From: Perna viridis
Taxonomy: Eukaryota
Reading direction: 5' to 3'
Assembly: GCA_037379345.1 (NCBI GenBank)
Contig: CM074512.1
Location: 54,395,597-54,459,596, forward strand
DNA: 64,000 nt
Position 1 is the first letter of the stretch. Every line of letters begins with the position of its first letter. Of the stretch, positions 224 to 61,621 are shown in pieces. A program made the position numbers and the translations under genes. A model generated the notes under the pieces. The model was not told the origin of the DNA and ran no database searches. It saw only the letters and a program-made list of their open reading frames with translations.

Positions 224-744
224 GTGAAAAACCATTTCCATGCGAATTCCCCGGCTGTGATCGTCGATTTGCAAATAGTTCTGACAGAAAGAAACATTCA
301 CACGTTCACACCAGCGACAAACCATACATCTGCCGTATCCGTGGTTGCGAAAAAACCTACACTCACCCAAGCTCACTTAGGAAACACATGAAAACTCACG
401 GTAACATTTCACCACTACCAGACAACGATTTCTCCACCACAGACGAAAACAGTGAACTCAGTGACTCAAGCCACAGCCCGAATCCTTTGAAGTCAACTCA
501 ACCGATCTCTTCGCCATGCAGTAGTGATTCTGATAGTCAGATTCACGAACTTTCATCATCGTCTGCAACTAGTCCATCACTCCCAGTACATCCAACTCCG
601 ACACTTCCACAGTCCAGTTTCTCGCAGCTGAACGAATGGTATGTGTGTCAGAACTCAACAGTTTCACCGAACAGTGACAATTTGTCAATGAACAATTTTG
701 GCAGTCTTGCCATGCACTCACAACCGCTCGTGCAGTTTTCGTGA
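224..744 (+). CDS. Zic: Zic-family zinc-finger TF (ZicA), terminal coding exon (ZF4, ZF5, C-terminus); first exon lies upstream of the window
   Basis: Acceptor ttttttatttcag ends at 223 (phase 1). Translation [59 protein letters not shown] is Zic ZF4-5, followed by the LNEWYV motif. TGA at 742-744. Confidence 0.96.
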
Positions 745-994
745 TATCTTCCGTAATGATCTGATTTGAAATAGTGCATAGTGTCTTCGACATGACATGT
801 TATTGAAATTCTGTTTTTGATTATTTTGTTATGTGATATTTATGAGTCAGTTTTGTTGAATCTCTATAATTTTAAATGTTTAAGAGATGGTAGTGCTTGA
901 TGAGCACGGTTTGTTGTATATACAATTTGAAATGTTTCAGACATTAAGACGGTTAAAATACCTCATTTTTGTGCAATATTGAATTATGAAAAAC

Positions 995-1000
995 AATAAA
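995..1000 (+). promoter_or_regulatory. Candidate polyadenylation signal of ZicA
   Basis: AATAAA about 250 nt after the stop codon. AT-rich context, so weak. Confidence 0.4.
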
Positions 1001-1453
1001 CTGATACATAATTTTTCGAAGTTAATGATCAAGATAAATATGTCACGCTAGAAAGCTTCTGGGACGATAATTTGATTCCGAAGAGGGTTTTTTTTATTAA
1101 AATAAATACTCAGCACGTCATTTTTGGGGAACAAATTATTGACCTATATGCAGCAGTTGGTAAGGCAAAGTTTGTAACCAATATTCTTTTTTCCATTAAT
1201 TTTCTGAAAAAGGAATTGACTGACCTGCTAACCAGAAAAATAGTATTGTTACAAAGGACAAAGTTTTATACTCTCATTCGAATCAAATAATCGTCACTTA
1301 TGCTAAATTTACACATTTCCAGTAACTTGTTTATTTGACACCAACTCCACTCGAAAAAGTTATTAGAACTTAAAAGTAGGTAAAATGCATCAAGATGGAG
1401 TAATAACATTTTAAACATCAGTCGTCCATCTGATGTCTATAAAAGGACCAGCC

Positions 1454-56928: not shown

Positions 56929-56992
56929 ATCAAGATTCAAGATTCTTTATTTCACTCAGACTCAAGAAATAAAGAATCTTGAATCTTGAATG
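56929..56992. mobile_element. 64-bp palindromic insertion made of two inverted LINE-like 3' tails
   Basis: Perfect 24-bp inverted repeat (56930-56953 / 56966-56989) with a 12-nt spacer; flanking 10-bp direct repeat TAAAAATGAA. Confidence 0.75.
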
Positions 56993-59900
56993 TAAAAATG
57001 AAGAATATTAGACTCTTAAAACCCAAAACACACTTATAAAATATTTCCTCCGCAAACATGAACACGTACAGACATTACAGAGCTAAACAAGAAAATTAAA
57101 ATTAAAATTAAAAACGGAAAAGAAAACCAATAAAAATTGGAGATAAGTATCACACAGCGGACGTCATTTTGCGCAGTTTCAAGTATGACATGTTTAGCTG
57201 TTTAAAAATATGACATTGTATCTTATGGTTATTGAAGTACAATCATTCATATACGTAATAAATCTTTTTTTTTCAATTTATCGTTTAATTCTCTCAAAGA
57301 GAAATGTGGATTCTATTCAGCGATAGACAATGTTTGTCTAGCGAAACAGAGTCTTGAGATGTCCATGTTCCGGAAGTCAATTGCATGTCGGTATAGGATT
57401 CTCCCCCATACCATTTAATCATGTTTTCTTTGTATTGATGAAGTTATGGCACATGACAGACTGTCAAATGGAGAATCGATGATTTGTTTGTGTATTTACT
57501 CCAAGATTAATTCTCCAAGTAATCCAATACTCTACAAGTGTTTATGATGATGCTTGATGTGAAACTTAATTATTGTTTGCATTAATTACTTGCTCCTGAT
57601 GAAGGAGCACTTATAAGTAAGAAGATTTTTTGGAGATTTAAAGAAAATCGTTTTACTTTTTTTTTAGTTGTTTTAAGCAAGTTTGACATTGTGCACTTAT
57701 GTTGTTATTCAATATCTTTGTTTGCATAGAATTGTCACATTGTTCCGATCAGCATTAAAATATGAACGCTAACATTTGAACTGGAAAAGAATAGTTTAAA
57801 AAGAGAAAAAAAATGAAATTATGATATAACACACTCAGTCTAGCATGTTATTAAAATACGTATCCATCTTGATGGCATATTGTTTATTTCTATATACAGC
57901 TGTGCCACACAATATATATAAGTAACAGGTTGCAGAAAATAGTGTAGTTCTCTCTACAAATGCTTGGTTTTTAACTTTATATACTTGTAAATTTCCCCCA
58001 TAAATATTGAAAATATTACGATGATAGTTTAGCTTCCAGCTGTTTTGAATTATTTTACTCTCAGAAAACACTTTGGAATGAATGCACTTTCTACAAATCT
58101 ATTACAGAAGACGTAATTTGACGTCTAAATGATGGCTGTTTTGAATTGTTGTATTGCTTGTCTGTCAAGGGGGGAAATTAAGCACAAGAACTTGTAAATG
58201 ATGCTGAGTAAAAACAAACAAAAAATGGTGAGAAAATTCTCAGCAGAGAGATCAAATATGATGTGATCTTTTGAACCTAGATATTTTGTCAGATTGTGAA
58301 TCCACTAGGGGATTTCACACCTTTTCCTTCCTGTGTTGTAGTGTAATGAATATTGTGTCATCATTCAGATCTTATTCATTTCATTTCTTGAAGCAAGTGT
58401 TAATTCGTCAGCGGGAAAATAGTTCCAAACAAACCAAGGCGAGCAGATATCAAAACACGAGCTTTGACAACATAAAATAAAATAAAATAAAAATCTTTAT
58501 TTAATTGGGTTCAACAAATAATATAATATGTTAAAATATCGCCCATTTCTCATTTATATATTTGTCATTTTGATTCAGGAAAATAAATATTAAAAAGAAA
58601 TGACCGGCAAAAAAAAATTAAAATTAAAAAGTGTCAGATAATGTAACGCGATTGAACAACGAATGCACTGATGGTGTTAACTAGTAATGTATCATTTATA
58701 TGTATTTATATCATAATTGCAAAAATAATAGACACGCCGATATTCTCAACCCTTCTGCAAAATGAATTAGTCTCCCAAACATTAAAGTTGATATAAATTA
58801 CAAAATTCCTGTAATAAACGAAATTATAACACCCAGTTGATGCATCAGACCATCATAAAACCTACATTACCGAGCAAATATGTATGGTATATTTATCAAA
58901 CCAAGTAATGGGCGTGAAGACATAATACGCAAAGAACACTCTCAGAACCATCTGGAATGGAACTTAGTTCCGACTTGTCCCCCATAACTGAAGTTTACGA
59001 CTACAATTAATGTCAAGTTGGAAAATTAAGACGCAATGGAGAATCAAGATGCGTTCTAGGAGATACGACAGAATCACATTGTTCTTGCTAGATTTATTTT
59101 GAGATGCGCGTTATTAATTGGCCTATTAATTAATCGTTAGTCTCGCTGTGAACTTTCACGTGCAGGCAGTGGGTGCTAATTGCTGGTTATGTAAAACTTG
59201 TTGGGAATGGACCCACTGGGGTCATTTTCGTAAGAGGAAGCACACCACTTCTCAGTAAAACACTGCTAGTCTTGTTTTGGACATCTTGAAAGGGTGTTTT
59301 CAAATTTTGTTTTATTAACTATTTGTCAGTTCAAAGGGTAAATTAGTTCAAATAGTATGAAGGTAATATGAAAGCATTACAAAAATAATATAAATTCGTT
59401 CCGCAAAAAAGAAACAAGAAAATAGTGTCTATTAACAAGTTCAATAAAAAATTATTTGGCAAAATTCCGTTTCGTTGTTGATTTATTTGAAGGTGATAAG
59501 TCTATCGAAAACCAATAATCTATTCCATTCTACACAAAACAAGTGACAACTTCACAAATAGTATTAGACACAAGTGGACAATCCGGTGACTTTTCTGTTA
59601 AAATTCGATATTTTTCACCTAGAGTAACCATCCAATTGATTTTAGGTGAAAAAAATTGTACTTGAAATGGCACTAGTATCAAGTGGGTTGTTACTTTTTA
59701 CAATGGAATTTGTATTTACAAATTAATTTTACAAATTAACTTTAGAAATTTTGTAAATTAACTTTCGGGAACATCTCAATTATCGTTTGTGAGACCTTAG
59801 GCCAATTGAGAAAATGTTATTTGGAATTTGTATTATGCACTTGTTAGAATTGACAGTTTTTTTTTGTATCCAGTTCGAATGGGTTTGAAATTTACAAAAT

Positions 59901-60753
59901 ATACTTTTAAAGTTCAAAGACTTGCTTCATAATAGTGACAAGTTTTTGCTTTCTGAAGGCTATTTTGTTAAATAAGTTACAAGTTTTAAGTGTTTAAAAT
60001 CAATTTATTTTTATGGGTTATTTAATATTCTTTAAGTGAGAAAAGGCTCTATTGATTGCACAAACATACAATTCAAAATGAACTTCTCTTCTTTAATTAT
60101 CTATAAAAAAGTTATTCTTGTATTTAGAAATGTATAGAATTATTTGAACAAGGCGTAACCTAATACACAATTATATAATATAAAATGTTGAAATATCCGC
60201 ATTTCGTGTTTACACTGCTCTGGGACTCTGCACTTTCGTTTTAATGTCGTAAAATAGGTACGGGTCTATCCGAAATTAAGAAATTTATTGAGTGACCAAG
60301 GTAAAATTTGTTAAATTTAATTTCATTTCCATTATCTATTTAAAATAAACAAATAAAGAGCAGTATCATATAAATTTGGTTTAAGTCAGTAGTATTCATG
60401 TGTCAAAATATTATCACGTTCGAGGAATAAAATCAGATCATTTAAATATAAATTCAACAAAAATTGTAAGTTAACATTTTATTCCATTAATATCTCTCTA
60501 AACAAAAGATAATTCTATGATTCATTTAAGATTATGGTCAGTGAATACTTTAAGATTTTCCCACAGTATAAGATAGTTATACAAATTATTAAACTATTTA
60601 TTTTTTTGCGTTTTAAATTGAAGTATTCTTTTCATTGAAACTTGGTATGTCGGTGAACTAAATTCCTTAATTTAATTGCATATCAAATCATTTCGGATTA
60701 TTTCAATTTTGATATCCGGTCTTGAAAACACAAATATTAATTTTATACCATAC

Positions 60754-61621
60754 CTGTATGCGTGCGTTTATGAATTTTGAGATTTTCAGATCTGGCGAAA
60801 ACTTTTCCACATCCCGGGAACGGACAAGGAAACGGTTTTTCTCCCGTATGGACTCTAATGTGGTTGACAAGTTTATATTTAGCTTTGAATGGTCTCTGTT
60901 CCCGAGCACACTCTTGCCAGTAGCAGGCATGATTTGTTTGTTCGGGACCTCCGACATGGTCCACTGTTATGTGAGTCACTATCTCGTGCATTGTGTTAAA
61001 CACTTTATTACAAGGCTTTTTAGGTTCTGGCTGCTCATAGTCCACCCATAAACACGTGTGTTCTTGTTTTATCTGCGGCCTCATGTACCGAAAAAATGCA
61101 CCGGGGCCATGAGGGCCCATGTTCATATGATTTAATGAGTTAATAGGTCCCATGTTATAGTGTTGCGCATAATGATCTGCTCTCGGAGGAAACTGTGCTA
61201 GCTGTTCCGGCCTGGAGTACACATCCGGAGGTGTTGTCAGACCAAATCGAACCTGGTTGTTCAAATGTGATGATGTCTGGTGTGGACCATCGTGTATACT
61301 CGGAAACAGAATGTGACTAGAGTTGGCTTCAGGATGGTGATGTGAATGGAAACTAGCAGATGTAGGGAACATACCGCCATGATGACCTGTGCCACCGGTG
61401 TCATGACTTGACAGTCCTATATCTGGACGCCGGAATAAAAAGTCTCTTGCAGCATAACTTCCTAAGTGTGAATGCGTAGCCCCGTATCCATTTGTTTGTG
61501 GTGGGTACTGCGGAGAACTCGACTGATTGTGCAATCCCTCATTCATAGGATGTGGGGGACTCAACTTCAATGCCCCCGGGGGAAGAGAAGCATGTGGATT
61601 TTCCATGTAAGGATTAATCAT
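60754..61621 (-). CDS. Zic: ZicC exon 1 (N-terminus, ZOC, ZF-NC, ZF1-3)
   Basis: ATG at 61621. Canonical [11 protein letters not shown]; [23 protein letters not shown]; ZF1-3 with the CW motif in ZF1 and ZF2. Donor G|GTATGG at 60754/60753; intron 4732 bp. Confidence 0.97.

Follow-up and report, generated by a model that had tools for sequence, protein, structure and literature searches.

A linked trio of Zic genes in the mussel Perna viridis and its counterparts in other pteriomorph bivalves

The window analyzed here, a stretch of 64,000 nucleotides of the mussel Perna viridis (GenBank assembly GCA_037379345.1, contig CM074512.1, positions 54,395,597 to 54,459,596 of the forward strand), harbors three genes of the Zic family, referred to below as Zic-A, Zic-B and Zic-C. 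As read from the list of open reading frames (ORFs) and the sequence, each gene comprises two exons, with A on the plus strand and both B and C on the minus strand (A→ ←B ←C). The trio is a real, old and lineage-specific bivalve cluster and not the product of some recent or accidental duplication. Coordinates without a prefix refer to the window.

Gene models, family membership and constraint

Both exons of Zic-B and Zic-C lie in the window. The coding part of Zic-B exon 1 (38053-38917, minus strand) encodes the ZOC and ZF-NC motifs and zinc fingers 1-3, matches Pfam zf_ZIC and is 92% identical to its Mytilus counterpart; it is preceded by a 5' untranslated region (UTR) that reaches at least 39060. 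An intron of 3,211 nt (34842-38052, minus strand, GT..AG), whose joint is supported by RNA, separates it from exon 2 (34294-34841, minus strand), which supplies fingers 4-5, the C-terminal tail and the stop codon, is supported by sequence and RNA contigs, and is followed by a 3' UTR to at least ~33870. Zic-C is built in the same way: the coding part of exon 1 (60754-61621, minus strand; ZOC, ZF-NC and fingers 1-3, Pfam zf_ZIC, 89% identity with Mytilus C), an intron of 4.7 kb (56022-60753, minus strand), and exon 2 with fingers 4-5, tail and stop codon (55501-56021, minus strand; 87% identity with Mytilus C). Conservation with Mytilus, as detected by blastn, extends upstream of Zic-C exon 1 to ~62025, and the stretch from 61621 to that point is probably the 5' UTR together with the promoter. 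For Zic-A, exon 2 (224-744, plus strand; fingers 4-5, C-terminal tail and stop codon) is apparent from its translation and a Pfam C2H2 match, and is 75% identical to the exon 2 of the Mytilus A-type gene. A probable 3' UTR follows at 745-1016 (plus strand), where the blastn match between Mytilus L016:12147-12960 and window 206-1016 extends beyond the stop codon. Exon 1 of Zic-A was located by a whole-assembly search at L002:1501-2323 (plus strand), outside the window and 1,558 to 736 bases before its first base, leaving an intron of ~0.96 kb. The initial annotation of this stretch, which had counted A among the genes of the window, is therefore right for exon 2 and needs to be amended for exon 1.

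Its description of three Zic genes free of disabling lesions stands: the reading frames of A, B and C are open, and the splice sites are canonical (A, ACAG/GTACGT...CAG/GT; B, ACGG/GTAAGG...CAG/GT; C, ACAG/GTATGG...CAG/GA). The single intron of each gene is in phase 1 and in the common position that had been proposed, cutting the Gly codon of the HTG/EKP linker after its first base in all three genes, with the junction of B confirmed by RNA. The proposed spacings of 33.5 kb (A and B, tail to tail) and 16.6 kb (B and C, in tandem) are likewise exact, with 33.55 kb between the stop codons of A (744) and B (34294) and 16.58 kb between the ATG of B (38917) and the stop codon of C (55501).

Family membership is clear on several grounds. 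Pfam zf_ZIC (PF18366) matches exon 1 of C with E = 9e-25 and that of B with E = 7e-25, with zf-C2H2_15 and zf-C2H2 behind it, and zf-C2H2 matches are found on the second exons of all three genes; exon 1 of A can be aligned with those of B and C over its whole length. With the motifs defined as RDFL/RDLF..RR for ZOC and FFRY(M/I)RP.IKQE for ZF-NC (after PMC2988786 and Aruga et al. 2006), ZOC is readable in all three translations (SRDLFFRR in A, SRDLFLRR and ARDFLFRR in the others), as is ZF-NC N-terminal to the fingers. More than 1,600 database matches were obtained at E < 1e-20, the named ones being Zic and not Gli or Glis, and the best matches are Mytilus proteins (89% identity for C, 92% for B and 77% for A). 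By every testable mark of the family, namely the fingers, the ZOC and ZF-NC motifs, the HTG/EKP intron and the nearest relatives, A, B and C are Zic genes. C is the copy closest to the single-copy Zic genes of other protostomes. Every B-type Zic carries Ile in the linker KR(I)HTG, a position occupied by Thr in all other Zic proteins compared, and B-type proteins end in PIMQYS; these two features together provide a simple diagnostic of the type.

The three genes are the complete Zic complement of this genome. A six-frame search of the 723-Mb assembly (46 contigs) with exon 1 of C returned no full-length Zic matches other than A, B and C, the next genomic match being 40% identical and confined to the fingers; the suggestion that further members might lie outside the window is thus not borne out. 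Synonymous change (pS) between any two copies amounts to 0.75-0.86 in both exons and is saturated, in agreement with the heavy synonymous divergence reported initially, and pS values of 0.6-1.0 in every 40-codon window leave no recent conversion tract among A, B and C. An assembly or haplotig artefact is excluded by the saturation of silent sites and by the recurrence of the arrangement, or of the part of it that could be read, in five other assemblies. Relative to the Mytilus orthologues, non-synonymous change (pN) lies far below synonymous change for each copy (pN/pS for exon 1: A, 0.11/0.86; B, 0.04/0.64; C, 0.05/0.62; exon 2 is similar), a 7- to 15-fold difference from which it follows that all three genes are under strong purifying selection.

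RNA data add direct evidence for Zic-B. RNA contigs of 1.6-1.9 kb from three studies skip 3,211 bases at 34839/38051, and one raw read has the same joint; given two to three ambiguous bases, this joint is equivalent to the modelled 34841/38053, with GT..AG borders on the minus strand. In a stranded RNA sequencing (RNA-seq) run, coverage is confined to the two exons of B with first mates on the plus strand, and the RNA therefore comes from the minus strand. The transcript extends 5' to at least 39060 and 3' to ~33870, 233 nt beyond position 34100. Among relatives, Logan contigs of 1.8-2.1 kb carry the complete coding sequences of A-, B- and C-type proteins; with no room for the introns, these contigs must represent spliced mRNA.

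These observations bear on the idea that only one copy does the work of Zic and that one or both of the others are silent or in decay. The faster evolution of A (77% identity to Mytilus, compared with 92% for B and 89% for C) would fit such a scenario, as would the restriction of RNA evidence in this species to B. Yet frames and splice sites are intact, pN is depressed in each copy as given above, each type has been retained in several orders, and related mussels yield cDNA contigs that carry A- and C-type proteins in full and without introns; B itself is both transcribed and spliced, so that the possibility that the copies are untranscribed falls for this gene. Decay of one or two copies is accordingly very improbable.

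Two further features of the RNA data concern the flanks and the intron of Zic-B. The 1,907-nt RNA contig of run X5 departs from the genome at 34243, 51 nt past the B stop codon, and continues with ~300 bases that lack a genomic match; an alternative 3' end, a different allele or a chimeric contig might explain this. Loose-ended RNA reads and contigs accumulate at a short dispersed repeat in the B intron (36395-36561), of which a second copy lies at 27635-27796 (83% identity between copies), and the RNA piled up there clearly originates from other genomic copies.

Arrangement and phylogeny in related bivalves

The same arrangement is found in the scallop Mizuhopecten yessoensis, where scaffold NEDP02004706.1 carries a gene on the plus strand (59219-63227), a B-type gene on the minus strand (131778-141861) and a third gene, again on the minus strand (208476-230554), corresponding to A→ ←B ←C. 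Parts of it can be read in other assemblies. In Mytilus galloprovincialis, an A-type gene (43414244-43416935, plus strand) and a C-type gene (43515259-43522666, minus strand) are convergent with ~98 kb between them; in Mytilus californianus, the minus strand carries B and C in tandem at a distance of 29 kb. Pinctada imbricata has an A-like gene (plus strand) and a B-type gene (minus strand) tail to tail with 29 kb between them, and two genes of Tegillarca granosa are convergent at a distance of 153 kb. A third Pinctada-like gene shares one 70-kb contig with a B-type gene. Non-B copies of oysters fall into two types or more (P0030/P0033 and P0200/P0007), and a third B-type cluster (P0080) exists as well. 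The two-exon layout recurs in every relative (Mytilus, scallop, Pinctada and Tegillarca), the rank of intron lengths is A<B<C wherever it can be read, and the annotation tables list no further gene within 10 kb of the Zic genes in the loci of the five relatives. The orthologues are linked in scallop, Mytilus, Pinctada and Tegillarca, against the possibility, raised initially, that they might be unlinked in related genomes. In the machine annotation of NCBI, genes of Mytilus, Mizuhopecten, Pinctada and Tegillarca are named 'zinc finger protein ZIC 4-like' or 'ZIC 1-like'; a single scallop scaffold carries three of these models, as does a single Mytilus chromosome.

Phylogenies were computed exon by exon with IQ-TREE (careful search, 33 rows), with database proteins cut at HTG/EKP and the window peptides analyzed likewise by exon. 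All pteriomorph Zic sequences form one clade (support 99/96 for exon 1 and 97/96 for exon 2), outside which lie heteroconch bivalves, gastropods, annelids, a nemertean and a brachiopod. Within it, a long-stemmed B clade uniting mussel, scallop, pearl oyster and one Logan species is recovered from either exon (100/100 and 100/99). A pteriomorph-only clade, saturated duplicates and an arrangement that recurs in relatives bear out the initial proposal of an independent, old and lineage-specific cluster.

The two exons tell different stories for the remaining copies. Exon 2 yields an A-type clade (81/84) that comprises mussel A, the scallop and Pinctada genes in the A position, and oyster P0030/P0033; the C-terminal motifs give the same sorting by type in the different orders. 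In the exon 1 tree, non-B copies group by order instead (scallops 100/100, oysters 99/96, ark shell 98/92 and mussels 83/87), and a quick tree of whole proteins agrees with this grouping. In approximately unbiased (AU) tests of groups chosen post hoc from the trees, exon 1 rejects a positional A clade (p = 0.00016), whereas exon 2 rejects by-order groups for scallops (p = 0.0098) and oysters (p = 0.0006).

Taken by itself, exon 1 would suggest that each order produced its A/C-type pair by a duplication of its own, that only B is old, and that the similarity in arrangement is coincidental; the by-order grouping in the exon 1 and whole-protein trees and the rejection of the positional A clade are what this history predicts. 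It does not account for the exon 2 tests and the A-type clade, for the sorting of C-terminal motifs by type, or for the fact that mussel and scallop agree in gene order, in orientation and in the ranking of intron lengths, an agreement that extends to pearl oyster for the part that could be read. A further observation concerns the scallop copies themselves, in which the first exons of the positional A gene and the positional C gene are 89.6% identical over 737 nt (L015:10121-10857 and L014:10139-10872), with 60-base windows of 90-100%. Identity drops ~120 bases into the coding sequence on one side and exactly at the border between exon 1 and intron on the other, so that the first 120 coding bases and exon 2 are excluded; correspondingly, pS is 0.34 in exon 1 (down to 0.08 in windows) and 0.72 in exon 2. 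A sharp tract confined to exon 1 is not what a young duplicate of a whole gene would leave, and reads as the footprint of gene conversion between the two inverted outer genes, limited to exon 1. The border of the tract may have been set by selection or by an RNA-templated event. Separate duplications in each order are thus improbable, and an old trio with later, exon-limited conversion between A and C is preferred. Because of such conversion, first-exon or whole-protein trees mis-date bivalve Zic duplications. By analogy with the other orders, A/C conversion may also have occurred in the mussel lineage, where sites are saturated.

Non-coding conservation and genomic surroundings

At least 26 collinear non-coding blocks, totalling 9.6 kb at 68-88% identity, were detected by blastn between the window and Mytilus. 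The window is comparable with the Mytilus loci over ~37 kb only, and conservation extends to ~29% of the non-coding sequence in that portion. Downstream of A, three blocks (2639-3219, 3995-4569 and 4968-5718) are 78-83% identical to, and collinear with, Mytilus L016. Downstream of B, blocks at 28346-28702, 29550-29671 and 30923-31427 match Mytilus californianus L020, the last at 86% identity and in single copy in the genome; two weakly conserved blocks found by blastn lie in the B intron (37104-37345 and 37506-37692), and five upstream of B are collinear to L020 (40027-40652, 41406-41688, 41918-42066, 43378-43704 and 44712-45133). Three blocks downstream of C (50937-51467, 51898-52145 and 52684-53500) match L017 and L021 by blastn, among them the strongest of all: 52684-53500 is 88% identical over 825 nt, above the coding exons, and is also single copy. 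Six more were found by blastn in the C intron (56610-56762, 57369-57592, 58000-58258, 58747-59201, 59490-60110 and 60344-60565), and those upstream of C (62411-62726 and 63373-63718) are followed by three past the window end, at window-equivalent positions 64156-67347. In all, four further conserved blocks lie just outside the window ends. Blocks adjoining exons are probably UTR or promoter; the other blocks are kilobases distant. No non-coding conservation with the flanks of the scallop or Pinctada genes was detected by blastn, such that it is seen only within Mytilidae.

An off-target control gave a single 72-nt stray match in 200 kb of flanks. This one stray match, the near-saturation of synonymous sites over the same distance, and the single-copy status of the two blocks tested (52684-53500 and 30923-31427) indicate selection on the blocks and argue against a repetitive nature. 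The blocks may be enhancers shared among the three genes that keep them together, an initial suggestion to which this dense, collinear conservation lends support, and are listed here as candidate elements for enhancer tests in mussels and oysters. The locus shows one mark of the genomic regulatory blocks found around developmental transcription factor genes: dense, collinear non-coding elements, single copy in the two cases tested, extend across the genes of a gene-poor region.

The surroundings are consistent with the initial impression that the window holds no other credible coding sequence. None of the ten non-Zic ORFs of at least 90 aa in the window has a Pfam match beyond one sub-threshold chance match, and neither an Rfam family (at gathering thresholds) nor a tRNA was found in the window; genes with short exons could escape this analysis. 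In a crude long-ORF scan of 264 kb, including 100 kb on either side, which may again miss short-exon genes, no other gene was recognizable from -100 kb to ~+152 kb. The first recognizable non-Zic genes on the C side are ORFs for AIG1/GIMAP-type GTPases, ~90 kb past the start of C (L040:8075-8734, minus; L041:2862-3836, plus; L041:7014-7622, minus). Before these, the scan encountered nothing but ORFs derived from repeats and the remains of a reverse transcriptase, the latter represented by broken, overlapping ORFs with a weak reverse-transcriptase match (L038:1944-3212, minus), which suggests a decayed retroelement.

The linkage of the trio might also be passive, reflecting a slowly rearranging chromosome region and no shared regulation. 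Bivalve genomes are noted for conserved large-scale synteny, which speaks for this view, and any function of the blocks is predicted from their sequence conservation. On the other hand, the order and orientation of the trio have been kept in a second order (scallop), and those of single pairs in three more assemblies, with spacings that shift two- to four-fold; moreover, more than a quarter of the comparable non-coding sequence (the ~29% noted above) is conserved with Mytilus despite near-saturated synonymous sites, with the strongest block exceeding the coding exons. Passive linkage is thus unlikely, if by no means negligible, and a trio held together by its regulatory elements is favored.

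Several other sequence features were observed in the window. A dispersed repeat with the ORF motif GLSGYNTENLTANHSG occurs at 24418-24702 and at window-equivalent positions -26191, 89487, 93359 and 109574 (L029, L034 and L036); these five copies in 264 kb are probably remnants of a transposable element or a short interspersed nuclear element (SINE). The interval 6001-8000, just past the last block downstream of A, is strongly asymmetric between the strands (GC skew 0.235, AT skew 0.207) and contains a tandem duplication of ~100 nt (6627-6832). Near-perfect palindromes are found at 56930-56989 (60 nt, in the C intron) and at 19644-19752 (109 nt).

Origin of the trio and comparison with known Zic systems

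Taken together, the locus probably represents a complete and functional mytilid Zic trio that originated on the pteriomorph stem, kept its arrangement, and underwent conversion between A and C in exon 1. The trio would have been generated by two duplications on that stem and would then have been fixed in order; order, orientation and the intron-length rank A<B<C would have been kept in scallop and, as far as can be read from one or two pairs, the arrangement in Mytilus, in pearl oyster and probably also in ark shell. The first exons of A and C would later have been homogenized separately in each order, recently in scallop and too long ago to be visible in mussel. B would be a divergent type that first evolved fast and then froze; C is the most conservative copy and A the fastest-evolving today. 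What holds the trio together may be long-range regulatory elements, its many conserved blocks, interleaved in surroundings poor in other genes. Zic genes pattern the nervous system and mesoderm across animals, and the three genes have probably split the neural and mesodermal roles of a single ancestral Zic.

A number of points weigh against this interpretation. Regarding expression, the RNA reads and contigs examined cover window 34100-39400, hence B only, with A and C outside that stretch. Regarding the locus, the claim of a gene desert depends on the crude long-ORF scan, and the conserved blocks could in part be UTRs or exons of non-coding RNAs, not enhancers. Regarding the comparison across orders, linkage was read in scallop, two Mytilus species, Pinctada and Tegillarca, and a B-type gene was not found for the ark shell. 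Regarding phylogeny, the support for the exon 2 A-type clade is moderate and C-type copies lack resolution there, the AU p-values are somewhat weakened by the post hoc choice of groups, and in mussels the exon 1 grouping of A with C is weak, with no low-pS tract left. Finally, the age of the trio, on the order of 450 million years, is a rough figure that follows from general bivalve divergence dates.

A more far-reaching version would have the trio as a pteriomorph Zic regulatory block in existence since about the Ordovician, with interleaved enhancers and with outer genes that repeatedly homogenize exon 1, encoding the N-terminal region and fingers 1-3, while C-terminal exons and regulation remain distinct. 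This version is quite possible and is put forward tentatively; if true, it would constitute an independent parallel to the vertebrate pairs, and a protostome system in which to ask why Zic paralogues stay linked.

In the searched literature, which did not extend to book chapters, no account was found of a bivalve Zic cluster, of the orthology of its members or of conversion between them. The machine-annotated genes of relatives are orthologous, but they are names only, so that the cluster, as far as these sources go, had not been characterized before. In an atlas of oyster larval single cells, one 'zic1/2/5/4' marker is assigned to apical neurons (PMC10396302), and another atlas reports 'ZIC-4' in one cell cluster (PMC12551290). 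Bivalve work that uses 'zic' as a single marker pools three genes.

Among known systems, a linked group has been described in the cnidarian Nematostella vectensis, where four of five zic genes lie in tandem on one scaffold (PMC2988786). This resembles the mussel trio as a lineage-specific local multiplication whose products are still linked, but it is a separate event, whereas the mussel cluster consists of three genes in mixed orientation that are conserved across orders. Most protostome lineages have one zic, flatworms with two being an exception, and a single zic is listed for Drosophila (odd-paired), Capitella (Ct-zic) and the clams Corbicula and Spisula (PMC2988786). The latter two are heteroconchs, and the single heteroconch copies seen here agree with that listing. 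Single protostome Zic genes belong to the same family and have the same domain set; by contrast, pteriomorphs possess three, and these are linked.

A further parallel is provided by the vertebrate pairs ZIC1/ZIC4 and ZIC2/ZIC5, which are arranged head to head. Like the mussel genes, these are linked Zic paralogues of tandem-duplication origin in regions with few genes and abundant conserved non-coding sequence, and share with them five C2H2 fingers, ZOC, ZF-NC and the HTG/EKP intron. Unlike them, mussel A and B stand tail to tail and B and C in tandem, with no divergent pair, and the mussel genes have two exons and lack the second intron of vertebrate Zic genes. Descent is also separate: A, B and C fall inside a pteriomorph-only clade, and because all pteriomorph copies form a clade of their own, their origin is independent of that of the vertebrate pairs. 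Thus, the trio is new as a cluster, and belongs to a known kind of system, the linked cluster of transcription-factor paralogues. The textbook view, shared by PMC2988786, holds one Zic gene in most protostomes and linked pairs in vertebrates only; the trio implies that Zic linkage after duplication has evolved at least twice, and provides a second, independent case for models of shared enhancers.

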